A DNA stretch of 29,970 bases, from assembly GCF_006345805.1 (NCBI RefSeq), contig NW_021832669.1, positions 1 to 29,970 of the forward strand. Direction: 5' to 3'. Below the pieces are notes generated by a model. That model searched no databases, was not told the DNA's origin, and was given only the letters and a program-made list of their open reading frames with translations. Positions 1-21,899 of this stretch are shown here, piece after piece. Source of the DNA: Octopus sinensis (Eukaryota). The translations under genes and the position numbers were made by a program. Every line of letters starts with the position of its first letter. Position 1 is the stretch's first letter.

Positions 1-2820
1 GTGTTCGTTTTGCCACGTGAATAACCGGGTGGTGGACTAGCGTTGCTTGGAATTGTGAATGGAAGTGTAGTAGTGAGATAGGCATCGAGAATAGGTTTGG
101 GTTACTGCAAGTTGTTTGTTAGAGCTGCTTAGTGAGCTAAAGCTCATAATTGTATATAATGATTTTTCATGGTAGTTTTTTAAAGAATCCATTCATAATA
201 AATTTTTTAAGTAGTGTTGGTTTGCCACGTGGATATAGTTTTTAGTTCTATTTATTCTATTTCTCCATTCATAATTTAAATGACGTTTACTTTCCATGGC
301 GCGTATCTTTTTTTTTTTTTTTTTTTACATAAGTTATTTCTATGGTAACGTAATTTTGGTTTGATTTTTTTAACGGCTAAGAATTTAATTTCACTTCATA
401 ATTGAAACTGACTTGTAAGTATGTATTTTATTTATCCTTATGTCATATTGTTATTTTTGATATTCTGGTTAATTACGATGTATTTAATGTTGTTTTCATA
501 GGAGTGTTTATGTATATGAGATTGTGTGTGAGTTTTTAGTTGTATATTTATTTATCTGTATGAGTGTGGGTGTGTAAATATGTTGTATATATCGAGTTTA
601 GTGAGTATGTATATGCGTATATGTGAGGGAGTATATGTATTTGTTGTGTTTGTGTGTTTTGCGTGTGTGTGTGGTTGTGTGTGATGTGTATATGGGTTTG
701 TTATTTAGGTTTTGGGATGTATGTGTTAATATGTCTGTGTGGGGAGGGAGTGGGTTTTGGTGTATATGAGGTTTATAAGTTAGTATAGGTATGTGTATAA
801 TCGTGGGTCTGTGGTTTACGTGTGTGTATTTGTGTGTGAATGTTTAGGTTAGGGGGATTGCTATATAGGTTTGTTATAGAGTTTAGCAAAGGGAGATTTT
901 ATCGTTATATGTTTTTAAGAGTTTTGGTTTATCATGGTTTTTTTAGGGAATTCGTGGTAATTTGTCTACTTTCGATGTGGTTGTTTTATTGCATTGTTTC
1001 ATTCATAATTTTTGAGTGGTGTTCGTTTTGCCACGTGAATAACCGGTGGTGGACTAGCGTTGCTTGGAATTGTGAATGGAATAGTGTAGTAGTGAGATAG
1101 GCATCGAGAATAGGTTTGGGTTACTGCAAGTTGTTTGTATAAGCTGCTTAGGTGAGCTAAAGCTCATAATTGTATATAATGATTTTTCATGGTAGTTTTT
1201 TAAAGAATCCATTCATAATAAATTTTTTAAGTAGTGTTGGTTTGCCACGTGGATATAGTTTTTAGTTCTATTTATTCTATTTCTCCATTCATAATTTAAA
1301 TGACGTTTACTTTCCATGGCGCGTATTCTTTTTTTTTTTTTTTTTTACATAAGTTATTTCTATGGTAACGTAATTTTGGTTTGATTTTTTTAACGGCTAA
1401 GAATTTAATTTCACTTCATAATTTGAAACTGACTTGTAAGTATGTATTTTATTTATCCTTATGTCATATTGTTATTTTTGATATTCTGGTTAATTACGAT
1501 GTATTTAATGTTGTTTTCATAGGAGTGTTATGTATATGAGATTGTGTGTGAGTTTTTAGTTGTATGATTTATTTATCTGTGAGTGTGGGTGTGTAAATAT
1601 TGTTGTATATATCGAGTTTAGTGAGTATGTATATGCGTATATGTGAGGGAGTATATGTATCTGTTGTGTGTGTGTGTTTTGCGTGTGTGTGTGTTTGTGT
1701 GTGAATGTGTATATGGGTTTGTTATTTAGGTTTTGGGATGTATGTGTTAATTTGTCTGTGTGGGGGAGGGGTGGGTATTGGTGTATATTGAGGGTTATAA
1801 GTTAGTATAGGTATGTGTATAAGTCGTGGGTCTGTGGTTTACGTGTGTGGTATTTGTGTGTGAATGTTTTGGTTAGGGGGATTGCTATATAGGTTTATTA
1901 TAGAGTTTAGCAAAGGGAGATTTTATCGTTATATGTTTTTAAGAGTTTTGGTTTATCATGGTTTTTTTAGGGAATTTGTGGTAATTTGTCTATTTTCGAT
2001 GTTGGTTGTTTTATTACATTGTTTCATTCATAATTTTTGAGTGGTGTTCGTTTTGCCACGTGAATATTATTTTTAATTCCATTTATTCCATTTCTCCATT
2101 AATTAATTTAAAGATGTTCGTTTCCAGAGCGGTTATACTTTTTATACATATGTTAAGTTCCTTGGTAAAGTAATTTTGTTTGGTGTATATGTTGAGGCTT
2201 ATATGTACTTGTGGGTGTGTGTGAGTGGGGTGGGTGTTTGTATTTGTTATGGGTGTGTGGTTTAGTGTGTGTATTGTGTGTGAATGTATAGGTTAAAGGG
2301 ATTGCTATATAAGTATGTTATAGTGTTTAGTAAAGGAGGTTTTATCATTTCTGTTTTGTGAGTTTTAGCTTATCATGGTAGTTTATAAAAGAATCCATTC
2401 ATAATTTTGTGTTTATTTGTCTGTGTGGGGTGAGTGGGTTTTTTGGAGTATATGTTGAGGTTTATATGTATGTATTGGTATGTGTAAGTGGTTGGGTATT
2501 TGTATATGTCGTGGGTGTGTGGTTTACGTGTCTGTATTTGTGTGTGAATGTTTAAGTTAGGGGATTGCTATATAGGTTGTTATAGAGTTTAGTAAAGGGA
2601 GATTTTATCATTATATGTTTTATGAGTTTTGGTTTATCATGGTAGGTTTGTTAAGGAATTCGTAGTAATTTGTGTCTATTTGCGATGTCTGTTGTTTTAT
2701 TGCATTGTTTCATTCATAATTTTTAAGTAGTGTTCGTTTACCAAGTGAATATAATTTTTAATTCCATTTATTCCATTTCTCCGTTCATAGTTTTGAGTGA
2801 TGTCCGTTTTCTAGAGCGTG
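1..2820. repeat. ~1.02-kb G/T-rich tandem repeat: two near-identical units plus rearranged partial units
   Basis: The motif GTGTTCGTTTTGCCACGTGAATA starts at 1, 1019 and 2044, giving periods of 1018 and 1025. Units 1 and 2 align throughout with small indels. Shuffled sub-blocks continue to about 2820. The + strand is strongly depleted in C. Confidence 0.9.
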
Positions 2821-3221
2821 AATGTGGGTTGTATGTGTGTGTGTGTGGGAGTATGAATAAGTATTGTGTTTTATAGTTGCCTAGACGTTTTTATGTGTAT
2901 GTATAGGGATATATATATAGGTGTGTGATTTAGTGTATGTAGTTAGATATGGTTATATATAATAGGTATATGTGATGGGTGTATATATAGTTTATTATTA
3001 TATTATTATTATTTTTTTGTTTTGTTTTATATTTTATATTTTATATTTTATATTTAATTGTTGATAGGTTTTTTTTAGTTTATATATTGTTTATATATTG
3101 ATTATATATGGATTATATATAGGTTATATATGGATTATATATTTATATTTTTCATTCATACTTTAATTATTTAAAATTATTATTTTTATATTTTAAAATA
3201 TTGATATTTTAGATTGGAAGT

Positions 3222-3264
3222 CCACCTGAAGATTGTCGATCAAGACAAGAAACGATTGTAGTGG
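3222..3264 (+). ncRNA. Minimal type I hammerhead ribozyme motif (Penelope-like element type)
   Basis: Stem I CCAC(3222-3225)/GTGG(3261-3264); core CTGAAGA 3226-3232; stem II TTGTC/GACAA with a 6-nt loop; GAAA 3249-3252; minimal stem III C-GATT-G; cleavage triplet GTA 3258-3260. Confidence 0.75.
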
Positions 3265-3358
3265 CGGTTTTTTTGACTATTTATTAAAATTTTATGTATT
3301 GATTAAGTCTTTCCTTGTTTGTTTTGCAAAATAGTGGTTTTGTCTCTAATAATATTAT

Positions 3359-4087
<729 letters not shown>

Positions 4088-4394: not shown

Positions 4395-4564
4395 CTGAGT
4401 TACTGCTACAACAATAGTAATGATCACTGCACATAATATTGCTATTAGTACACCGATGATAGATAATTTGTTTTCTTTATCTTCGATGTTAATGACTTTT
4501 TCCGATCTTTTCTTTTTTCATCAGCCTCTTGATCAGCTCCTCCAGTACCTCCACAAGGCATCAT
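4395..4564 (-). pseudogene. Exon 1 (cytoplasmic tail plus type II TM helix) of a second TNF-like paralogue; one 1-nt frameshift in an A run, so either a pseudogene or an assembly error
   Basis: Translates as MMPCGGTGGADQEADEKRKDR/KKVINIEDKENKLSIIGVLIAILCAVIITIVVAVTQ, followed by a CAG|GTACAT donor. It is 170 nt, one base short of 57 codons. Homologous to 17901-18061. No downstream exons were found in 1-4394. Confidence 0.7.
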
Positions 4565-4659: not shown

Positions 4660-4950
4660 CACCTCCTGTCACTCCTCTCTTTCTAGTACTTTCTTACTAA
4701 CTCAACTGCGCTCTCTCCCCGTCTCTATCTTCTCTCTCCCCTCTTGTCTTTCACTTTCTATCTCTTCTCGTCACTCCTCTCTTTCTCTCTCCCTTTCTAT
4801 CTCCTCTCTCCCCCTCTCTATCTTCTCTTTCCTCTCTTAATCTTTCGCTTCTATCTCTTCCTGTCACTCCTCTCTTTCTTTCTCCCCTCTCTATCTCCTC
4901 TCGCTCTTTGTCCTTCTCTCTCTTTCTTTTCTATTCTTTTCTATCTCTCC
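4660..4950. repeat. CT-rich polypyrimidine low-complexity tract
   Basis: Degenerate (CT/CTT)n with internal duplications. The homologous, longer tract is at 18165-18545. Confidence 0.85.
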
Positions 4951-6784: not shown

Positions 6785-7945
6785 CTTTCTACCAAAGGCA
6801 CAAGGTCTGAAATTTGTAGGGAGGGAACCAGTTTATGACATTGACCCTGATCATTCACTTGTATTTCATTTATCAACCCCAGAAGAATGTAAGGCAAAGT
6901 AGACTTGAGCGGAATTTGAACTCAGAATGTAAAGATGGATGAAATATTGCTAAGCATTTCGCCTGGCCTGCTAACGTTTCTTATTTCTTTATTGCCCACA
7001 AGGGGCTAAACATAGAGGGGACAAACAAGGACAGACAAACGGATTAAGTCGATTACATCGCCCCCAGTGCATAACAGGTACTTATTTTATCGACCCCGAA
7101 AGGATGAAAGGCAAAGTCGACCTCGGCGGAATTTGAACTCAGAATGTAACAACAGACGAAATACCTATTTCTTTATTGCCCACAAGGGGCTAAACATAGA
7201 GGGGACAAACAAGGACAGACAAAGGGATTAAGTTGATTACATTGATCCCAGTGCGTAACAGGTACTTAATTTATCGACTCCGAAAGGATGAAAGGCAAAG
7301 TCGACCTCGGCAGAATTTGAACTCAGAATGTAACAACAGACGAAATACCTATTTCTTTATTGCCCACAGGGGCTAAACATAGAGGGGACAAACAAGGACA
7401 GACAAGGGATTAGTTGATTACATTGATCCCAGTGCGTAACAGGTACTTAATTATCGACTCCGAAGGATGAAAGGCAAAGTCGACCTCGGCGGAATTTGAA
7501 CTCAGAACGTAACAACAGACGAAATACCTATTTCTTTATTGCCCACAAGGGGCTAAACACAGAGGGGACAAACAAGAACAGACAAAGGGATTAAGTCGAT
7601 TACATCGCCCCCAGTGCGTAACAGGTACTTAATTTATCGACTCCGAAAGGATGAAAGGCAAAGTCGACCTCGGCGGAATTTGAACTCAGAACGTAACGGC
7701 AGACGAAATACCTATTTCTTTATTGCCCACAAGGGGCTAAACATAGAGGGGACAAACAAGGACAGACAAAGGGATTAAGTTGATTACATTGATCCCAGTA
7801 CGTAACTGGTACTTAATTTATCGACCCCGAAAGGATGAAAGACTAAGTCGACCTCGACGGAATTTGATCTCAGAACGTAACGGCATACGAAATACTGCCA
7901 AGCATTTCACACGGCATGCTAATGATTCTGCCAGCTCAACATCCT
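6785..7945 (-). mobile_element. Head-to-tail array of SINE family A: five ~184-bp units plus one degenerate copy
   Basis: Tail motif TATTTCTTTATTGCCCAC starts at 6982, 7166, 7350, 7529 and 7713. Only the rightmost unit keeps the tRNA-like head. A B-box-like GAGTTCAAATTCC is present on the minus strand. Confidence 0.9.
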
Positions 7946-8120: not shown

Positions 8121-8521
8121 TACTCTCTTTTACTTCTTTCAGTCATTTGACTGCGGCCATGCTGGAGCACCGCCTTTTTTAGTCGAGCAAATGGACCCCG
8201 GGACTTATTCTTTGTAAGCCCAGTACTTATTCTATCGGTCTCTTTTGCCGAACCGCTAAGTGACGGGGACGTAAACTCACCAGCATCGGTTATCAAGCAA
8301 TGCTAGGGGGATAAACACAGACACACAAACACACATACATATATATATATATATATACATATATACGACAGGCTTCTTTCAGTTTCCGTCAACCAAATCC
8401 ACTCACAAGGCATTGGTTGGCCCGGGGCTATAGCAGAAGACACTTGCCCAAGATGCCACGCAGTGGGACTGAACCCGGAACAATGTGGTTGGTTAGCAAG
8501 CTACTTACCACACAGCCACTC
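8121..8521 (-). mobile_element. tRNA-derived SINE family B (internal TA/CA microsatellite)
   Basis: The minus strand begins GAGTGGCTGTGTGGTAAGTAGC...CCGGGTTCAGTCCCACTG (A and B boxes) and ends AAATGACTGAAAGAAGTAAAAGAGAGTA. Homologous to 13677-14047. Confidence 0.85.
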
Positions 8522-10716: not shown

Positions 10717-11507
10717 CGAGGGACGTTCAATAAGTAATGCCTCTGACCCACTTGCAGTTGTTTGATCTAGCTGAAATTTTGCATGTGCAATTATTTATAT
10801 CTCTATAGAGTAAGTGGCAAATTACAGCTCTGAATTAATTGTGGTTTCTGATTTACAGGTGTTTGAACCGAGTCAAGTGTGAAATGGAGCCTGTTGAGTG
10901 TCGAGCAGTGATCCGGTTTTTGTATTTGAAAGGACGCACACCACGTGAGACTTTTGATGAAATGAAAGTAACTTATGGTGATGATGCCCCATCATATGAC
11001 CTTGTAAAACGCTGGCATCGTGAATTCAAACATGGTCAGAACTCTGTGGAAACAGCTCCCAGATCTGGTCGCCCCTTCTGCCATTGATGAGGCATCTGTC
11101 CGTCAAGTTGAGGCTGCCATTTTGGAAGATCAACGCATAATTATTCGCCAAATAGCCCATGAGGTCAAGATTAGTACCGGGTCTGTGGAAGCTATCATTC
11201 ATGACCATTTGCATATGCAAAAGGTGTCTGCCAGATAGATTTCCAGGTTGCTCACGCCTTTCCAGAAGCAAGAACGCGTCGAGTGCTCGAGGGTGAATTT
11301 GGAGATGTGCCAAGAAGATGAGTCAAAATTTTTCAAAAGACTGATTACACAGGATGAAACCTGGGTCCATCACGATGATCCAGAGACCAAAGCCCAGTCA
11401 ATGCAGTGGAAGCACCGTGACTCACCCCCTCCAAAGAAGGCAAGGGTACAGCCCTCCGCTGGCAAGGTCATGCTCACAGTCTTCTGGGACCAGGACGGAG
11501 TAGTGAT
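10717..11507 (+). mobile_element. Mariner (DD34D-type) transposon, 3'-truncated, with a defective transposase
   Basis: TA|CGAGGG TIR start; ATG at 10884 (MEPVECRAVIRFLYLKG..., HTH region); PRSGRP then a frameshift; WIPRLL with W changed to TAG at about 11236; LITQDETWVHH (first catalytic D); KVMLTVFWD. Broken off by a SINE tail. Confidence 0.92.
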
Positions 11508-11509
11508 GA

Positions 11510-11600
11510 ATAAGTCCTGGGGTCGATTTCCTCGACTAAAAAGGTGGTGCTCCAGCATGGCCACAGTCAAATGACTGAAACAAGTAAAAGAGTAAGAGTA
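11510..11600 (+). mobile_element. SINE family B 3' fragment
   Basis: AATAAGTCCTGGGGTCGATTTCCTCGACTAAA...AAATGACTGAAACAAGTAAAAGAGTA matches the family B tail. Confidence 0.8.
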
Positions 11601-13095: not shown

Positions 13096-13255
13096 TTAAC
13101 CCTTTCGTTACTGTATTTAGTTTGAGATGCTCCATATTTCTTTCAATTATTTTAAATATAACAAAGAATTTAGTAAAATAACTTAATTATCATTAAACTA
13201 GTGTTTAGGAACATAAATTGGGACTAAGGTTGGGTGGAAGATTTTAGTTCAAAAC
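13096..13255. mobile_element. Probable DNA-transposon/MITE fragment beginning TTAA-CCCTTT (piggyBac-like end)
   Basis: TTAA at 13096-13099 followed by CCCTTTCGTTAC. Only one terminus is visible. It resembles a repeat I recall from octopus assemblies, which I have not verified. Confidence 0.4.
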
Positions 13256-13610
13256 GGTGATAGACAGGCTTCTGTGCTTGTCAGGACTGATGATTTTTAC
13301 CCTGTTCCTCTTCAGAAAGATTCTGTCATTAGCTTTCAATTTGGTGTAACTGATAATTCTATTGGCTCATGTTTTGTTATATGTGAGGAATGTAAAGTCT
13401 TTTTCTTAGATTCAATCTTTGTTTCATTCTTTGTGTACAAAGTTAGGAATAAATGAAAGTCAGGTGTATTTTCTGGAATATAAAGTTGCACTACACATTT
13501 TATGTCATAAACTCCATCTTGTGGTATAGTAATATAGGTTCCATTGATCAATTCTATGTCGCCTTCTTGCTGGTTCTCATCTTTCATCCACTGCAAATAA
13601 GTAATTTCCT
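13244..13610 (-). pseudogene. Last exon encoding a TNF-homology-like domain
   Basis: Acceptor TTTCCATTTCAG|. Translates as EEITYLQW...GDIELINGTYITIPQDGVYDIKCVVQL, resembling the THD 'LxW...NG.l.iP.dGvY.i...V' pattern. After a 1-nt frameshift it continues KLKANDRIFLKR...RSLSITVLN*, resembling 'L..GD.i.v' and the final strand. Confidence 0.75.
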
Positions 13611-13676
13611 CTGAAATGGAAATTAATAATAACAACAACAATAAATACATTTTAATTTTTTTCACACAGCAATATA

Positions 13677-14047
13677 GGCGCAGGAGTGGCTGTGTGGTAA
13701 ATAGCTCGCTTACCAACCACATAGTTCCGGGTTCAGTCCCACTGTGTGGCACCTTGGGCAAGTGTCTTCTACTATAGCCTTGGGCCGACCAAAGCCTTGT
13801 GAGTGGATTTGGTAGATGGAAACTGAAAGAAGCCCGTCGTATATATGTATATATATATATGTGTGCATGTATGTTTGTGTCTGTGTTTGTCCCCCCAACA
13901 TCGCTTGACAACCAATGCTTGTGTGTTTACGTCCCCGTAACTTAGCGGTTCAGCAAAAGAGACTGATAGAATAAGTACTAGGCTTACAAAGAATAACTCC
14001 TGGGGGTCAATTTCCTCGACTAAAGGCGGTGCTCCAGCATGGCCGCA
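13677..14047 (+). mobile_element. SINE family B, in intron 4 of the TNF-like pseudogene
   Basis: GGCGCAGGAGTGGCTGTGTGGTAA...CCGGGTTCAGTCCCACTG head, with a body matching 8121-8521. Confidence 0.85.
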
Positions 14048-14330
14048 TGTTGGAGGCTTGCATGCTTGTTTGCTTGCAAAGTACCCTTAAATCTGTAATT
14101 TCAGTTATTTAATGGGCATAATGCAAATTATGAGAAAAAATGTGCAATAAATCTGTATAAATTAACTTACCCAACTCTTTGTAACCCTTTGTGTTTAGGT
14201 AAAAGAACTGAAAATGGTGAACTGAAAATTAAGAAGAGAGAAAGCAGACAGTGAGAAGGATATATTTTAATATAGGTTCAATATCAACAGAAGACTATTC
14301 AAGGAAGAGTACCTCCTGATGTATTTCATA

Positions 14331-14637
14331 CTAGCATTATCGCCCCGCGGTGCTTGGGTTTGTAGGGAAGTAACTATATAAGCATTTTAGAGTTTTTTTC
14401 CCTTATATAAAACCGAGTGAAAAATGGACTAAAAACGGGGAAAAAATGATGGTAAATTTTTTTTTTAAATCGTAGACTCATTGTAGACGCGCACTAATAC
14501 CTAGAAGAGCTCGATATGAATCACAACTATAAGATACCCGCTTTTGGTTTTAAACTGCACTGCAAAATGTGGGAGTAGTTAGGAATCTAAATCGGAGTAG
14601 ACAGACACACACACAACTACAGTTTTATATATAAAGA
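14331..14637 (-). mobile_element. Non-autonomous Helitron (same family as 8532-8932)
   Basis: The minus strand reads A|TCTTTATATATAAAA...CCCAAGCACCGCGGGGCGATAATGCTAG|T. Confidence 0.85.
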
Positions 14638-14784
14638 TATTGAATACTTCAGATTAGCATCTAATAAACAATTATACAACATATTAACTGTTTTACAATC
14701 ATCATTAACCATAATGAAAATGATCTATATGGAGAACAAGTATTAACCATTAATGAAAGAGTGCCAAGACTAAGCATCCATTAA

Positions 14785-15448
14785 GGCGGCGAGGTGGCAG
14801 AAACGTTAGCACACCAGGCGAAATGATTTGTGGTATTTCGTCTGTCGTTACGTTCTGAGTTCAAATTCTGCTGAGGTCGACTTTGCCTTTCATCCTTTCG
14901 GGGTCCATAAATAAAGTACCAATTTCGCACTGGGGTCGATGTAATCAACTTAATACCTTTGTCTGTCTTTTTGTGTTCCCTCTATGTTTAGCCCCTTGTG
15001 GCAGTAAAGAAATAAGAAACATTAGCACGCCGGGCGAAATGCTTTGTGGTATTTCGTCTGTCGTTACGTTCTGAGTTCAAATTCTGCCGAGGTCGACTTT
15101 GCCTTTCATCCATTCGGGGCGATAAATAAAGTACCAATTTCGCACTGGGGTCGAGTAATCGACTTACTAATACCTTTGTCTGTCCTTGTTTGTTCCCTCT
15201 ATGTTTAGCCCCTTGTGGGCCGTAAAGAAATAAGAAATATTAGCACGCCGGGCGAAATGCTTTGTGTTTATTTCGTCTGTCGTTACGTTCTGAGTTCAAA
15301 TTCCACTGAGGTCGACTTGCCTTTCATCCTTTTGGGGTCGATAAATTAAGTACCAGTTTTGCATTGGGGTCGATGTAATTGGCTTAATCTGTTATCTGTC
15401 CTTCTTTGTCTCCTGTATGTTTAGCCCCTTGTGGGTAGTATAGAAATA
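14785..15448 (+). mobile_element. Tandem trimer of SINE family A
   Basis: Full head GGCGGCGAGGTGGCAGAAACGTTAGC at 14785. Units restart at GAAA(C/T)ATTAGCACG at 15016 and 15234, giving periods of 216 and 218. Confidence 0.9.
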
Positions 15449-16550
15449 TATAAGCATCCATATATTTCACACATCGCACAGTAGTTTCGTGAGCCTTAAC
15501 ATGGTCATCTAAAGCCATTGTCCAGTCAAATATTGTGCAGCATCTCTTTCATATATTTAATGATGGTGTATTTTTGCCATTTATTTCTTTAGTAGTATGT
15601 CTGTTTTTTTTCATGTTGAAGGTATTGCTATCTATTTTAAGACTGTAGTGTATTAAGGAGATGTTCAGTGATTTCATTGACATTACAATATGTTACAGTG
15701 TCATGATATTATGAACATGCAAAAAGCAAAATAATGGCAAAATATGTACTTACATTTAGAATCTGGTGTCTGATCTGTTGTCTGATCTGTTGTCTGATCT
15801 GGTACTTTACTTTGTGTCTAGAGTAGAGAGAAAAAGAAAATTAAGATAAGATTGTGTTAGCTGTTGTTTGTATTAATTACATCACATTGCTGTCCTTTTT
15901 AATGATTGTATCAAGACTGACACTGTCTTGTTATAATCTTGGATCAGACTTGATATTTGTACCAATACATTTAATGTTGTAGCTGATGTTGTCATCCTTT
16001 AGCTTCCAGATTAATGTGGAGAAGGTTGTTGCATGTCTCTTCTTGTGGTGTCTGAAGGCTGAAAGATGTTTGTTGTATCTGGATTAAATTTTTTATCTAC
16101 TGATTCAATAGAATACTTGGTCTTAGTAGTAACATCAGAAGAAAGATCCTAAGACAAAAAACTATATAAGATGTTTGTTTATGTTCCCTTGAAAAACGGG
16201 ATCTTTTAAAATTTAAGAACCTCCAATGACTGTAAAAATTACAGAGAAGGGATTTTTTCTTTGTGTCCACCTTTTATAAAATAATCTTAGTGGGGATTAA
16301 ATATAGACCACCTGACACATTATAACTATTCTAGTATGGTTTTGTGTAATTCTGATATCTATAAGACACTGGTTATATTTGCTGTGGAGGTGATTATCTT
16401 CCCTGTGTTTTTTATATATATATATATATATAATATATATAATATATATATAATATCAGTATAGCCCAGCATTGCTCAGGATTAAGTTAGGATTATTAAG
16501 TGATCAAGCGCTTTATTTCAAACCAAAATAAGTGACATCGACATCAAATT

Positions 16551-17450
16551 GTGACATATGACAGTATGTGTGTGTGCTTGCTGACTAGTTTTCTTTTAGT
16601 AATATACTAAATGACTGAAACAAATATATAAATGAAAATAAATACAAGACTTTTGGTACTTAATGGGAAAAAACTTTGGAGGACTCGTACACATTACATA
16701 TATGTACAGAATAGAAGTTTGTGACATATGACTGTATGTGTGTGTGCTTGTTGACTAGTTTTCTTTTAGTAATATACTAAATGACTGAAACAAATATATA
16801 AATGAAAATAAATAAAAGACTATCAGTATTTAATGGGAAAAAAACTGTGGTGGACTTGTACACATTACATATATCTACAGAATAGAAGTTGAAATTTCAA
16901 AAGCAGGTAAAAGAGAAATTGTGTTATATGACTGTATGTGTGTGTGTGCTTGTTGACTAGTTTTCTTTTAGTAATTTATTAATGACTGAAACAAATATAT
17001 AAATGAAAATAAATAAAAGACTATCAGTACTTAATGGGAATAAACTTTTGGTGGACTTGTACACATTACATATAACTACAGAATAGAAGTTGAAATTTCA
17101 AAAGCAGGTAAAAGAGAAATTGTGTTATATGACTGTATGTGTGTGTGTGCTTGTTGACTAGTTTTCTTTTAGTAATATATTAAATGACTGAAACAAATAT
17201 ATAAATGAAAATAAATAAAAGACTATCAGTACTTAATGGGAATAAACTTTTGGTGGACTTGTACACATTACATATAACTACAGAATAGAAGTTGAAATTT
17301 CAAAAGCAGGTAAAAGAGAAATTGTGTTATATGACTGTATGTGTGTGTGTGCTTGTTGACTAGTTTTCTTTTAGTAATATACTAAATGACTGAAACAAAT
17401 ATATAAATGAAAATAAATAAAAGACTATCAGTACTTAATGGGAAAAAACA
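16551..17450. repeat. ~200-bp tandem satellite, about 4.6 units, in intron 1
   Basis: Units start at 16551, 16721, 16921, 17122 and 17324 (170, 200, 201 and 202 bp). The last is cut off by a SINE at 17451. Confidence 0.92.
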
Positions 17451-17792
17451 GTCCCACTGCATGGCATCTTGGGAAAGTGTCTTCTGCTATAGCCCCAGGC
17501 TGACCAATGCCTTGTGAGTAGATTTGGTAGATGGAAACTGAGAGAAGCCTGTCGTATATATGTATATATATATATGTGTGTGTGTGTCTGTCCCCCTAGC
17601 ATTGCTTGTCAACCAATGCTGGTGTGTTTACGTCTCCTGTCACTTAGAGACTGATAGAATAAGTCCTGGACTTACAAAGAATAAGTCCCGGGGTCGATTT
17701 GCTCGACTAAAAAAGGTGGTGCTTCAGCATGGCCGCAGTCAAATGACTGAAACAAGTAAAAGAGTAAAAAAAGAGTAAAAAAAAAGAGAGTA
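17451..17792 (+). mobile_element. 5'-truncated SINE family B
   Basis: Starts at GTCCCACTGCATGGCATCTTGGG and ends with the AAAAGAGTAAAA tail. Confidence 0.85.
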
Positions 17793-17804
17793 AAACAAAT
17801 CCAT

Positions 17805-19027
17805 TTGACTGCAAGTTATGAGGAAACAAAAGTCGTTGGTGGAGTTCTGACCGTTCTGCCTACTCGGCACCTTTGTCGAAAGTAAATAAAAAGAATTTAC
17901 CTGAGTTACTGCTGCAACATGATCACTATACATAATACTATTAGTACACATAATACTATTAGTACTTCCTTTTTTGTTAATGGCATTTTAGTATAGTTCT
18001 AATGTTTTCTTTTTTGATCAGTCCCTTGATCAGCTGCTTCAGTACCTCCACAAGGCATCATTGTAATGTATTTTGAGATTTAATTTAAGTCGGCTTTATA
18101 CAGTTTCAAGGAAGTGAATGAGGCTTCATTGACACACCTTTCTCAGGTACTTTCTTGCTAACTCAACTGCTTCTCTTCTCTCTCTCCCCCCTCTCTGTCT
18201 TCCTCTCCCCTCTTGTCTTTCGCTTTCTATCTCCTCCTCCTGTCACTCATCTTTCTTTCTCCCCTTCTCTATCTCCTCTCTCCCCCTCTCTATCTCTTTC
18301 CCCTCTTGTCTTTCGCTTTCTATCTCCTCCCATTCTCTCTCCCCTTCTCTATCTCCTCTCTCCCCCTCTCTATCTTTTCTCTCCCCTTCTCTATCTTCTC
18401 TCTCCCCCTCTCTATCTTCTCTTTCCTCTCTTGTCTTTCGCTTTCTATCTCCTCCTGTCACTCCTCTCTTTCTTTCTCCCCCTCTCTATCTCCTCTCGCT
18501 CTTTGTCCTTCTCTCTCTTTTTTTCTATTCTTTTCTATCTCTCCTCCAATCACATTTACTTAATTTACCTATATCCAGTTTTTTTTATAATTTTTTTTTT
18601 TTTGCAATTGGCAATAGAAACAGTATCAATACCCTTTCTACTACAGGCACAAGACCTGAAATTTGGTGGGGAGAGGTTTCACAGTGTTTCACTGGTACTC
18701 ATTTTATTGACCCCGAAAGGACGAAAGGCAAAGTCAAGCTCAGTGGAACTCAGAATGTAGCAGACAAAATACCCCAAAGCATCTTGCCTGCCGGGCTAAC
18801 GATTCTGCCAGCTTGCTGCCCTAATAATAATAATAACAACAACAACAATTTAATGATAAATAATAATATCAATTATAATATAATAAACAATAATAATAAT
18901 AATAACAACAACAACAACAACAACATAATAATAACAATGATATAATAATACTAATAACAACAACAAAAAAATATTCAGACAAATACATAACAAAAACACC
19001 AGGACTTACAAACACATATAACATACA
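17805..19027. repeat. Segmental duplication of 4090-5441 (intron 1 start, exon 1, promoter, CT tract, SINE, (AAT)n and R4 stub)
   Basis: Collinear blocks, from GTTATGAGGAAACAAA at about 4101/17815 to CACCAGGACTTACAAACACATATAACATACA ending at 5441/19027. Confidence 0.92.
18095..18100 (-). promoter_or_regulatory. Candidate TATA box of the TNF-like pseudogene
   Basis: TATAAA on the minus strand, 34 nt upstream of the ATG at 18061, and conserved in the paralogue. Confidence 0.4.
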
Positions 19028-19187: not shown

Positions 19188-20306
19188 TATGTGCCACCGA
19201 CACAGGTGCCAGACGAGGCTGGCGAACGGCCACGCTCGGATGGTGTTTTTTATGTGCCACCGACACAGGTGCCAGACGAGGATGGCAGACGGCCACGCTC
19301 GGATGGTGTTTTTATGTGCCACCGACACAGGTGCCAGATGAGGCTGGCGAACGGCCACGATCGGATGGTGTTTGTTACGTGCCCACAGCAAGGAGGCCAG
19401 TTGATGCGGTACTGGCTACGGCCATGTTCGGATGGTTTTCTTGTGTGCCACCGGCACTGGTACCACAAAGATACAAATTCCATTGATGTTCATCTATTTC
19501 GATTTGTTTTGATTTGATTTGATTTTCACATGCCTCAACAGGTCTTCACAAGTGTCACAAGAAGGAAGGTATGCACAGGTGGACTGACTACGTCCCAGGT
19601 AGGGGCCACGGGTTATGGCCTGACTAGTCTTGCCGGGTCTTCGGATGGTGTTTTTATGTGCCACCGACACAGGTGCCAGATGAGGCTGGCGAACGGCCAC
19701 GATCGGATGGTGTTTGTTACGTGCCCACAGCAAGGAGGCCAGTTGATGCGGTACTGGCTACGGCCACGTTCGGATGGTTTTCTTGTGTGCCACCGGCACT
19801 GGTACCACAAAGATACAAATTCCATTGATGTTCATCTATTTTGTTTGATTTGATTTGATTTTCACTTACCTCACAGGTCTTCACAAGTGTCACAAGAAGG
19901 AAGGTATGCACAGGTGGACTGACTACGTCCCAGGTAGGGGCCACGAGTTATGGCCTGACTAGTCTTGCCGGGTCTTCGGATGGTATTTTTATGTGTCACC
20001 GACACAGGTGCCAGATGAGGCTGGCGAACGGCCACGATCGGATGGTGTTTTTATGTGCCCACAGCACGGAGCCAGTCAATGCGGTACTGGCTACAGCCAC
20101 GTTCGGATGGTTTTCTTGTGTGCCACCGGCACTGGTACCACAAAGATACAAATTCCATTGATGTTCATCTATTTTGATTTGTTTTGATTTTCACTTGCCT
20201 CAACAGGTCTTCACAAGTGTCACAAGAAGGAAGGTATGCACAGGTGGACTGACTACGTCCCTGGTAGGGGCCACGGGTTATGGCCTGACTAGTCTTGCCG
20301 GGTCTT
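19188..20306 (-). repeat. Tandem amplifications of the RTE 3' end: three ~330-342-bp units plus three 62-63-bp units
   Basis: GACTAGTCTTGCCGGGTCTT (the ORF stop region) occurs at 19622, 19957 and 20287. TATGTGCCACCGACACAGG occurs at 19188, 19251 and 19313. Confidence 0.92.
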
Positions 20307-21899
20307 CTCACGCACAGCATACTTCCATAGGTCTCGGTCTCTAGTCATTTCCTTGGTGAGACCTAAAGTTCGAAGGTCGTGCTTCACCACCTCGACCCAG
20401 GTTTTCCCGGGTCTACCTCTTCCACAGGTTCCCTCAACTGCTAGGGTGTAGCACTTTTGCACACAACTATCTTCAGCCATTCTTGTCACATGACCATACC
20501 AGCGCAGCCGTCTCTCTTGCACACCACAACTGACGCTTCTTAGGTTCAACTTTTCTCTCAAGGTACTTACACTCTGACGATTATGAACACTGACATTACA
20601 CATCCATCGGAGCATACTGGCTTCATTTCTTGTGAGCTTCCGCATATCCGCAGCAGTCACGGCCCATGTTTCACTACCATGTAGCATGGCTGTATGTACA
20701 CATGCATCATACAGTCTGCCTTTTACTCTGAGCGAGAGGCCTTTTGTCACCAGCAGGGGTAAGAGCTCTCTAAACTTTGCCCAGGCTATTCTTACTCTCG
20801 CAGTTACACTTTCAGCACACCCACCCCCGCTACTGACTTTGTCTCCTAGGTAGCGGAAGCTATCAACTACTTCTAGTTTGTCTACCTGGAACGTGGTAGA
20901 AGTTGGTCTCTGCACATTTCCAGTGTTTATTGCTCCTGAGCATCTGCCACAAACTATTTTCCTAGTTAGCCTTCCTTTGACATTGCTGCACCTCTTATGT
21001 GTCCATAGCTTACACTTGGTGCACCTTATAGAATTTCTACCTACACCTTTTTTACAGATCGAGCAGGGCCATCTACCTGAAGTCGTTTGTGATTGGTCCA
21101 CCTTCCTACTTATTAGGACTTTGGTTTTGGCTAGGTTGATTCTAAGGCCCTTCGATTCTAATCCTTGTTTCCACACCTGAAACTTCTCCTCCAGTTCTGA
21201 TAGTGACTCAGCAATTAGAGCAAGGTCATCAGCATAGAGGAGCTCCCAGGGGCATCCTGTCTTGAATTCCTCCGTTATTGCCTGGAGGACTATGATAAAT
21301 AGGAGGGGACTGAGGACTGAACCTTGGTGGACCCCAACCTCTACCCGGAATTCTTCACTGTACTCGTTGCCAACCCTCACCTTACTAGCTGCGTCTCTGT
21401 ACATGGCTTGCACAGCTCTCACTAACCATTCATCTATCCCTAGTTTCCTCATTGACCACCAGATAAGGGATCGGGGGACCCTGTCAAAGGCTTTCTCCAA
21501 GTCAACAAAAGCCAGGTACAAGGGCTTATCTTTGGCTAGGTATTTCTCCTGCAGCTGTCTTACCAGGAATATAGCATCAGTAGTACTTTTCCCTGGCACG
21601 AACCCAAACTGCATATCATCTAAGCTAACTCTCTCTCTAATTAATTGGGCTATAACCCTCTCCGTAACCTTCATTACCTGATCCAGCAGCTTGATGCCCC
21701 TGTAGTTATTTGTATCTAGGGCGTCGCCTTTACCTTTGTAGCAGTTGACTATTATGCTGCTACACCAGTCATTGGGTATGACTCCTTCGTGTATCACCTG
21801 GTTAACTATACGGGTGACTAAGCTATAGCCGACACTACCAGATATTTTGAGCATCTCTGCAGTAATTCCTGATGGGCCTGGGGCTTTCCCTGTTTTCAT
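20289..21899 (-). CDS. RTE reverse transcriptase portion of the ORF (536 aa open stretch)
   Basis: ORF track translation contains the RT motifs and C-terminal RRLRWYGHV...RGRP typical of RTE elements. It is the distal part of a frameshifted ORF starting at about 23386. Confidence 0.9.
   Translation of the reverse strand: MKTGKAPGPSGITAEMLKISGSVGYSLVTRIVNQVIHEGVIPNDWCSSIIVNCYKGKGDALDTNNYRGIKLLDQVMKVTERVIAQLIRERVSLDDMQFGFVPGKSTTDAIFLVRQLQEKYLAKDKPLYLAFVDLEKAFDRVPRSLIWWSMRKLGIDEWLVRAVQAMYRDAASKVRVGNEYSEEFRVEVGVHQGSVLSPLLFIIVLQAITEEFKTGCPWELLYADDLALIAESLSELEEKFQVWKQGLESKGLRINLAKTKVLISRKVDQSQTTSGRWPCSICKKGVGRNSIRCTKCKLWTHKRCSNVKGRLTRKIVCGRCSGAINTGNVQRPTSTTFQVDKLEVVDSFRYLGDKVSSGGGCAESVTARVRIAWAKFRELLPLLVTKGLSLRVKGRLYDACVHTAMLHGSETWAVTAADMRKLTRNEASMLRWMCNVSVHNRQSVSTLREKLNLRSVSCGVQERRLRWYGHVTRMAEDSCVQKCYTLAVEGTCGRGRPGKTWVEVVKHDLRTLGLTKEMTRDRDLWKYAVREKTRQD

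Follow-up and report, generated by a model that had tools for sequence, protein, structure and literature searches.

The split gene LOC115229433, on the minus strand of an Octopus sinensis contig (18061-13244), is very probably a pseudogene of the unprocessed type (duplicated, with introns kept) from a family of TNF-superfamily-like ligands that is restricted to octopods. The parental exon-intron structure was retained, an intact paralogue exists, and the disabling lesions lay in the homology-defined frame and outside homopolymers. Frameshifts were also present in the O. vulgaris orthologue, which comes from an independent assembly.

Exon structure of the locus

The window, that is, the whole stretch of DNA that was analysed, is the complete 29,970-bp contig. 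A minus-strand split gene had been proposed at 18061-13244 in the initial annotation, and this proposal was confirmed by exon junctions and phases that were the same as those of three intact paralogues (P0002-P0004) and of P0001, the NCBI model for this contig. In that model the locus is annotated as protein-coding and is spliced at the family splice sites to give a 146-aa product. Whether paralogues use these splice sites had been suggested as a check; all three intact paralogues did so, with the same phases. Every splice site of LOC115229433 was still intact, and P0002-P0004 were 77-79% identical to the conceptual domain of the window copy (79% for P0002). Homology to the paralogues gave four coding exons (18061-17901, 15817-15754, 14221-14171 and 13610-13244) rather than the five that had been claimed. 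The features of the locus, together with a second first-exon copy, were as follows.

17901-18061, minus strand: exon 1, aligned with five other exon-1 copies; ATG at 18061-18059, splice donor CAG/GT at 17901/17900
17999-18001, minus strand: in-frame TAG after codon 20, within an inserted segment (ATTAGAACTATACTAAA...)
17906-17920, minus strand: loss of 7 nt between 17920 and 17919, which creates a TAA
16014-16148, minus strand: 'exon 2' (mucin-like stalk) of the initial annotation; intron-1 sequence, no exon
15754-15817, minus strand: short stalk exon (64 nt; phase 0 in, phase 1 out), present in P0001
14171-14221, minus strand: 51-nt exon (labelled exon 4), encoding the first beta-strand of the TNF-like domain
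13244-13610, minus strand: last exon (labelled exon 5), encoding most of the TNF-like domain
13336-13344, minus strand: loss of 1 nt between 13344 and 13343, which creates the TGA at 13338-13336
13244-13269, minus strand: in-frame loss of 3 nt between 13269 and 13268; terminal TAA at 13246-13244
4395-4564, minus strand: another copy of the first exon, in the same orientation as the pseudogene and 8.7 kb downstream of it

The segment at 16148-16014 was rejected as an exon, since it was missing from the paralogue proteins and the same stops were found inside introns of the intact genes. Its sequence was 95-99% identical across all copies, the introns of the intact genes included, and the stop codons there were identical. 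With this extra stalk exon dropped, the unbroken protein would be approximately 210 aa in length rather than the 275 aa that had been estimated, and the stalk is short, without the mucin-like region. The claimed threefold DQT repeat from a 12-bp unit was found at 15801-15766, where three 12-nt units encode (P)DQTTDQTTDQT(P); it represents a 24-nt in-frame expansion that was seen in the window copy alone among the copies compared.

Lesions and probable decay of the window copy

Exon 1 was a hybrid, in which the usual first exon (TATA box, 5' UTR and MMPCGG start) was joined to an inserted segment. This segment supplies another in-frame ATG (17986-17984), after which comes the sequence that encodes the hydrophobic membrane anchor. 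In a first alignment the TAG at 18001-17999 had been read as a TGG/CGG-to-TAG point mutation; this reading was discarded when the alignment of more first-exon copies revealed the inserted segment. Since the segment that holds the TAG was also found in the 'type 2' first exons of O. vulgaris, the TAG is not a simple point nonsense mutation. The 7-nt deletion claimed in the initial annotation was confirmed against five other exon-1 copies. As a result of this deletion, an in-frame TAA (17908-17906) lay five bases ahead of the exon-1 splice donor and the membrane anchor was out of frame with every downstream exon. The type II membrane anchor that had been described was therefore present in the intact paralogues, but as encoded in the window copy it runs into the TAA.

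The 51-nt exon, whose sequence was identical to that of the O. vulgaris orthologue, carried a 3-nt in-frame insertion and read FHHFQFFYL compared to FHHALFYL. The replacement of AHL by FFYL, which had been taken as a trait of the family, stems from this insertion in the window copy and its orthologue; intact family members read FHHA(L/F)F.L at that strand.

At the protein level, the last exon was 91% identical to P0002 ahead of the frameshift and 78% identical beyond it. The 1-nt deletion, which reads ACAC-CAAATTG compared to ACACGCAAATTG, fell outside any homopolymer and gave rise to the TGA at 13338-13336. It placed the last 40 or so residues out of frame, which in the structural model make up strands G and H and the final part of strand F, and the final two to three strands that close both sheets would not be made. 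The terminal TAA was located seven codons ahead of the stop of the paralogues and cost only six residues; both this TAA and the diverged 3' end were common to the window copy and the O. vulgaris orthologue. The earlier claim of three stops was not supported in count or in nature: the TAG was located in an inserted segment, and the TAA and TGA each followed a deletion. The view that the lesions were not of the homopolymer type was upheld for both the 7-nt and the 1-nt deletions. Rescue by cephalopod A-to-I RNA editing was considered and rejected on reasoning, since editing could recode UAG or UAA but could not mend either of these deletions.

The orthologous copy in O. vulgaris (L001:21092-29346) was 96.4% identical to the window across 8.3 kb and had the FQFF insertion, an IPEN motif and the early TAA in common with the window copy. 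In its exon 5, insertions of 4 nt and 1 nt that the window copy lacked caused frameshifts at other sites; judged from these differences, it is decaying independently. In agreement with the earlier proposal that pseudogenisation is real, the indels were thus not homopolymer-type and the orthologue was broken in an independent assembly. None of the lesions shared by the two species was clearly disabling, and for this reason the timing of inactivation is uncertain. Identity between the species was 97.3% in exon 5, 98.6% in intron 3 and 97.8% in downstream DNA, a comparison of small numbers (Fisher p = 0.22). At the sequence level exon 5 appeared to be conserved no more strongly than the non-coding DNA that flanks it, which fits neutrality; intact copies also differed almost solely by nonsynonymous changes, and the contrast with the broken copy was not sharp.

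It is very improbable that the locus is still used, either to make a truncated soluble 146-aa protein that interferes with intact members or to make a regulatory transcript. The spliced NCBI model with family splice sites, the intact splice sites and the TATA-containing upstream region, which was kept at the window copy, favour such use, and the protein-coding annotation may have transcript or model support. However, the 146-aa product had no signal or anchor and an incomplete domain, in which strands G and H and the last part of strand F are missing, such that it should not be secreted, fold or signal. In addition, the O. vulgaris orthologue was broken elsewhere, so no particular truncated form was conserved, and no excess conservation was seen at the locus.

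That the gene is intact in the animal, and that the lesions belong to a degenerate haplotig or arose as errors in an unplaced long-read contig that was poorly polished, is very improbable. The window is a 30-kb unplaced, repeat-rich contig, and the second exon-1 copy is broken where a GG pair has been reduced to a single G, a change that might be an error. The main lesions, however, removed 7 nt and 1 nt at sites outside homopolymers, the first exon of the window copy was a hybrid and several indels in this copy were in frame, the conservation of exon 5 was not above that of flanking DNA, and the frameshifts of the orthologue (4-nt and 1-nt insertions) came from a separate assembly.

The pseudogene resembled unprocessed pseudogenes of tandem immune-gene clusters in that introns and splice sites were kept, there was an intact neighbour and several independent disabling indels were present. 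As in birth-and-death clusters, its divergence was neutral-like and its orthologue had decayed too. The only departures were the hybrid first exon and the duplicated first-exon array of O. vulgaris. In the proposed sequence of events, the family would expand by tandem segmental duplication in units of approximately 14-16 kb, and the window copy would have been freed from constraint and then decayed.

TNF-type versus C1q-type domain

The initial annotation had proposed a TNF-like C-terminus, to be checked against the Pfam TNF and C1q profiles. Pfam TNF (PF00229) was the only recurring match, just under threshold for the closest paralogues: against a cut-off of 23 bits, the window pieces scored 18.6, P0002 20.4 and P0003 22.0, and in the latter two proteins the match spanned profile positions 2-122 of 127. 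Four of the 14 family members matched at E≤0.01 (best 3.2e-6). Pfam C1q (PF00386) was not matched by P0001-P0004 at E≤10 or by any of the 14 members at E≤0.01. Searched against the PDB, the family profile gave lymphotoxin-alpha (7dov, E = 2.2e-5) as the only significant sequence match; no significant match was obtained in a single-sequence PDB search. Several O. bimaculoides members are named 'TNF family profile' or 'THD domain-containing' in UniProt.

An AlphaFold2 model of the intact paralogue P0002 was obtained from a 14-sequence input (an input of three near-identical sequences gave an unusable pLDDT of 51.9). The mean pLDDT was 80.6, with 10-residue blocks of 83-97, mostly >90, over residues 71-200, and a ten-strand TNF jelly-roll was predicted in the C-terminal domain of approximately 150 aa. 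The 50 Foldseek PDB matches listed were all TNF, RANKL, TL1A, FasL or TRAIL entries, plus antibody or scaffold complexes that we take to hold CD40L; these matches had a probability of 1.00, target-normalised TM-scores of 0.63-0.83 and sequence identities of 11-20%, and no C1q chain was among them. In P0002 a hydrophobic helix spanned residues 27-53 and a signal peptide was absent from the N-terminus, which indicates a type II topology, and the stalk (KQSKVQVQTPASK or TQSKVPDQTTDQTTDQTPDSK) had no collagen-like Gly-X-Y repeats.

The assignment of the domain as a TNF-superfamily-type ligand rather than C1q holds, with the recurring but sub-threshold Pfam TNF match, the lymphotoxin-alpha match and the Foldseek matches listed all pointing the same way. 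C1q-domain proteins belong to the C1q/TNF superfamily and have a ten-strand jelly-roll of the same fold class as TNF. Despite this common fold, the low identity to TNF ligands and the sub-threshold Pfam score, a C1q-type domain or another jelly-roll without a TNF homology domain is extremely improbable given the unmatched C1q profile, the lack of a collagen stalk or signal peptide, the type II topology, and the TNF-ligand content of the PDB match and of the Foldseek matches listed.

Conventional TNF-superfamily ligands (TNF-alpha, lymphotoxin-alpha, RANKL, TL1A, FasL, TRAIL and CD40L) were the best fold and sequence matches of the octopod family, which is likewise type II; common to both are a jelly-roll of roughly 150 aa at the C-terminus, the motif P.DG.Y.I...Q. 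in strand C and the motif H-A-x-F/L in strand A. The family differed in its identity of 11-20%, without orthology to any vertebrate member, in its very short stalk and in a hydrophilic S-I-T-x-L last strand in place of F-F-G-A-F; the window copy itself, unlike these ligands, is broken. Intact members are type II membrane proteins of approximately 210 aa, in which a short cytoplasmic tail is followed by a single membrane-spanning helix, a stalk of little length and, at the C-terminus, the TNF homology domain. By analogy, such proteins would form trimers and engage a cysteine-rich TNF-receptor-type partner.

Range and clustering of the family

An exhaustive homologue search returned octopod proteins only, plus two marginal, probably spurious matches, and a word-indexed search with the family alignment added a single Argonauta protein. 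All convincing relatives were octopods, in line with the lineage-specific subfamily suggested earlier. Single-domain type II TNF-like ligands are known outside vertebrates, in Drosophila Eiger and in bivalve TNFs such as those of oyster, and lineage-specific expansions are known in molluscs (general knowledge and PMC11869874). No direct sequence link between these invertebrate ligands and the octopod family was detected in the exhaustive search, and the literature search found nothing specific on a described cephalopod TNF-ligand family.

The birth-and-death cluster that had been postulated was evident on chromosomes. In O. vulgaris the broken copy was located 15.6 kb upstream of an intact copy, with a further family member 0.53 Mb from the locus, and in O. 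sinensis three divergent members lay head to tail within 70 kb on CM016882.1. Inside the window, by contrast, a tandem cluster rested solely on the second exon-1 copy.

In the O. vulgaris first-exon arrays, two domain units were preceded by seven copies with a splice donor; these duplicated exons could serve as alternative promoters or membrane anchors that are spliced to a shared ligand domain. Nearly all differences in the domain exon of intact copies were amino-acid-changing, and in one pair this exon diverged faster than its own intron. Because of these mostly amino-acid-changing differences and the first-exon arrays, the pseudogene might be read as a casualty of an undescribed, fast-diversifying octopod-only TNF-like ligand family, which is unlikely; the feature in the window is real, but as a by-product of gene duplication in tandem it is ordinary.

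The weight of the pseudogene itself is small and amounts to an annotation correction, in that LOC115229433, modelled as a 146-aa protein, is a decayed copy. More broadly, a highly divergent family of TNF-type ligands, private to octopods and expanding in tandem, is overlooked at standard Pfam thresholds. This family bears on the cataloguing of cephalopod innate immunity and cell-death signalling, and provides a birth-and-death system on a small scale, in which orthologous pseudogenes are dated.

That the window is short and unplaced was counted against the pseudogene reading. No second TNF-like domain was found in it with close or divergent family queries, and no downstream exons followed the exon-1 copy at 4564-4395 before the contig ended in satellite DNA. 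A tRNA scan of SINE-like arrays found no tRNA, and a 228-aa neighbour in L001 was rejected as a family member, as it had no similarity. The exon-1 copy at 4564-4395 had its own TATA-containing upstream region and had lost 1 nt between 4475 and 4474 (GG to G), as a result of which its ATG and membrane anchor were in different frames.

Exon structure and lesions of LOC115229433

When the conceptual C-terminal domain was used as a query, it returned the 146-aa protein of Octopus sinensis LOC115229433, which is encoded on the window contig itself, together with three intact O. sinensis and O. vulgaris relatives, 209-221 aa in length (77-79% identity over 97% of the query). LOC115229433 is located on the minus strand of the window, which is a complete unplaced O. 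sinensis contig of 29,970 bp. Exons were defined by mapping the paralogue proteins to their own loci (L001-L003) and to the window, followed by DNA alignment of each exon. Four coding exons, with intron phases 0, 1 and 1, were identified in the window pseudogene, and the junctions in the NCBI model (P0001) were exactly those of the homology-defined exons.

Coding exons of the window pseudogene
18061-17901, minus strand: exon 1, cytoplasmic tail and membrane anchor; donor CAG|GT
15817-15754, minus strand: stalk exon, 64 nt; paralogue mapping and DNA alignment
14221-14171, minus strand: 51-nt exon; paralogue mapping and DNA alignment
13610-13244, minus strand: last exon; paralogue mapping and DNA alignment

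A fifth, "mucin-like" exon (16148-16014), proposed in the initial annotation, was missing from every paralogue protein and corresponded to intron 1 sequence of the intact genes, where its counterpart was 95-99% identical and had identical stop codons. Since this segment is not exonic, an unbroken copy would encode a protein of approximately 210 aa rather than the 275 aa first proposed. The threefold DQT repeat noted at the same time was real (a 12-nt unit present three times at 15801-15766); exon alignment revealed that it was a 24-nt in-frame expansion found in this copy only.

Compared to five other first-exon copies, exon 1 carried a 7-nt deletion between 17920 and 17919, which shifted the anchor frame out of phase with the exon that follows and onto a TAA (17908-17906) immediately ahead of the donor. 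In the last exon a 1-nt deletion between 13344 and 13343 (ACAC-CAAATTG versus ACACGCAAATTG), outside a homopolymer, led to a TGA at 13338-13336; the 37 codons after this TGA were recognisable in another frame and were 78% identical to the intact paralogue P0002. A further 3 nt were deleted in frame between 13269 and 13268, and the terminal TAA (13246-13244) was seven codons ahead of the stop of the paralogues. Mapped on the P0002 model, the frameshift was at the end of strand F, so that strands G and H were lost. The annotated 146-aa product started at an internal ATG, lacked the anchor and stopped at the TGA at 13338-13336.

The TAG at 18001-17999 was ruled out as a point nonsense mutation, since wider alignment showed that the first exon was a hybrid. 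Its 5' part consisted of the usual TATA box, 5' UTR and MMPCGG start, and was followed by a segment (ATTAGAACTATACTAAA ATG ...) that was also present in five O. vulgaris first-exon copies. In those five copies the ATG after this segment started a short intact reading frame (MALTKKEV...AVTQ); the window equivalent of this second ATG was at 17986-17984, and its frame was also broken by the 7-nt deletion. The gene had been described as disabled by three stops and a 7-nt deletion; it is disabled, but the nature of the stops had been misread, as the TAG belongs to the inserted segment of the hybrid exon and the TAA and TGA result from deletions.

TNF-type fold of the intact family members

Pfam TNF (PF00229) was the sole domain match that spanned a whole profile. 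The scores for the window pieces (18.6 bits), P0002 (20.4) and a second intact paralogue, P0003 (22.0), were all under the cut-off of 23; the P0002 and P0003 matches covered profile positions 2-122 of 127. When 14 aligned members were scanned singly, Pfam TNF was matched at E≤0.01 by four (best 3.2e-6). Searched against the PDB, the 14-member profile matched lymphotoxin-alpha (7dov, E 2.2e-5) over the A' to C strands. AlphaFold2 modelling of P0002 with three sequences gave a pLDDT of 51.9; the model relied on was made with 14 sequences and had a mean pLDDT of 80.6, with blocks of 83-97 (mostly >90) over residues 71-200. It comprised a helix (27-53) followed by ten strands. The 50 Foldseek matches listed were all TNF-alpha, RANKL, TL1A, FasL or TRAIL entries, or else complexes with an antibody or scaffold which we take to hold CD40L, with a probability of 1.00 and target-normalised TM-scores of 0.63-0.83. 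Several O. bimaculoides members were already labelled in UniProt as 'TNF family profile domain-containing' or 'THD domain-containing'.

The Pfam, PDB profile, AlphaFold2 and Foldseek results all pointed to TNF, confirming the initial family call. TNF was preferred over a C1q-type domain, since no Pfam C1q match at E≤0.01 was found in any of the 14 members scanned singly and the family lacks both a collagen stalk and a signal peptide. By analogy with the TNF superfamily, the intact members would act as type II ligands that form trimers and bind cysteine-rich receptors.

Twenty proteins were recovered when a set of 1.84 billion representative proteins was searched exhaustively with a profile. 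The convincing ones were all from O. sinensis, O. bimaculoides, O. vulgaris and Argonauta hians, in agreement with the lineage-specific subfamily suggested earlier; two marginal matches look spurious, one being a chytrid repeat protein and the other a metagenomic protein of 1209 aa. The divergent last strand (SLSITVL region) was a true family trait, S-I-T-x-L. FFYL, which had been regarded as a divergent motif, was confined to the window copy and its orthologue, the family motif being FHHA(L/F)F.L. No published description of an octopod TNF-like family was found in the literature searched and, as far as these searches show, the family is undescribed. The pseudogene is ordinary and unprocessed; the family behind it is mildly interesting.

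Decay of the orthologous copies

Window 15232-7047 was 96.4% identical over 8.3 kb to O. vulgaris L001:21092-29346, a higher value than that obtained with any paralogue. The O. vulgaris orthologue had the 3-nt insertion of the window copy (FHHFQFFYL), and WMK, IPEN, the early TAA and the diverged 3' end were common to both. Its last exon was broken elsewhere, by 4-nt and 1-nt insertions at sites that differed from those in the window, and none of the lesions common to both species was clearly disabling. Since two independent sister-species assemblies each contained a broken orthologous copy, the lesions are considered to be real, as first proposed, and on this sequence comparison we take LOC115229433 as a real pseudogene. 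On small numbers, there was no sign of purifying selection on the last exon between the window copy and the orthologue (Fisher p 0.22), because its identity was 97.3%, compared to 98.6% for intron 3 and 97.8% for downstream DNA.

With its anchor out of frame, and lacking the final strands that complete both jelly-roll sheets, the window copy would be unable to make a TNF-type ligand. As O. vulgaris and O. sinensis break the gene differently, a dominant-negative or regulatory role, though possible, is unsupported. Rescue by RNA editing was rejected, since editing cannot repair indels.

Tandem cluster, first-exon copies and repeats

Within the window the proposed tandem cluster was reduced to one TNF-like domain, no further one being found there, and a second first exon with its own upstream region, 8.7 kb downstream of the pseudogene. 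A 1-nt deletion (GG to G) split the ATG of this exon from the anchor frame, and beyond it the contig ended in satellite and GT-rich repeats. The cluster was clear beyond the window. In O. vulgaris the exons of P0003, which are intact, followed 15.6 kb downstream of the broken copy, and another member was 0.53 Mb from this locus on the same chromosome. The spacers downstream of two intact O. sinensis genes were 98.3-98.6% identical to that of the window, one continuing towards the second first exon, and three divergent members were arranged head to tail within 70 kb of O. sinensis chromosome CM016882.1. These arrangements can fairly be described as birth-and-death evolution of a tandem family. 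One annotated member from O. bimaculoides, P0005 (LOC106872472, 315 aa), matched over two stretches, a partial TNF-like domain and a full one in series, and may be a read-through gene model joining two tandem copies.

Other features of the window
4564-4395, minus strand: second first exon
20289-21899, minus strand: 536-aa ORF with reverse-transcriptase domain (Pfam RVT_1, E 8e-33); broken ORFs on to ~23455
11248-11574, plus strand: mariner-type transposase fragment (Pfam Transposase_1, E 7e-12), within the spacer that separates the second first exon from the pseudogene
14799-15448, 6982-7895, 16549-17449, 13676-14047, 17449-17779, 8125-8521: repeats in introns and spacer
1-4087: left end of contig, 3 kb strongly GT-skewed (GC skew ~0.55-0.59), then a 16% G+C block
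18155-18760, 4711-4902: CT-rich low-complexity repeats (GA-rich on the gene strand), immediately upstream of each first-exon copy in the window

The O. vulgaris locus L001 (OX597837.1) had seven first-exon splice donors (8644, 10181, 12903, 15170, 17450, 31277 and 34020) upstream of only two TNF-like domain units. The usual MMPCGG start was present in two of the seven first exons; the other five were of a short 'type 2' (MALTKKEVLIVLCVLAVLCAVIIAIVVAVTQ), one with ATA for ATG, and were preceded by ATTAGAAAACATTAGAACTATACTAAAC repeats, in units of ~2.3-2.7 kb. These copies may simply reflect plain tandem amplification, or may serve as alternative first exons. Among the last exons of the intact copies (L002, L003 and L001:38354-38731), nonsynonymous to synonymous counts were 9:0, 14:1 and 7:1, and L002 and L003 differed by 2.1% in the domain exon and 0.37% in the adjacent intron (Fisher p 0.019); these small numbers hint at diversifying selection or patchy gene conversion.

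The RVT_1 ORF, which had a G+C content of 50% in its surrounding block, is upstream of the gene and probably represents a LINE-type retrotransposon. The introns and spacer were dense in repeats. Units of 216 bp, 184 bp and 202 bp formed tandem arrays, and dispersed elements of ~330-370 bp occurred many times, in both orientations, at all related loci; no tRNA was found in these repeats by ARAGORN. A 37-bp satellite was present in the 16% G+C block together with a long AT microsatellite, and the GT-skewed and satellite left end may account for the assembly ending shortly beyond the second first exon. CT-rich repeats were also present upstream of every O. vulgaris first-exon copy; they therefore belong to the duplicated unit, and perhaps to the promoter region.
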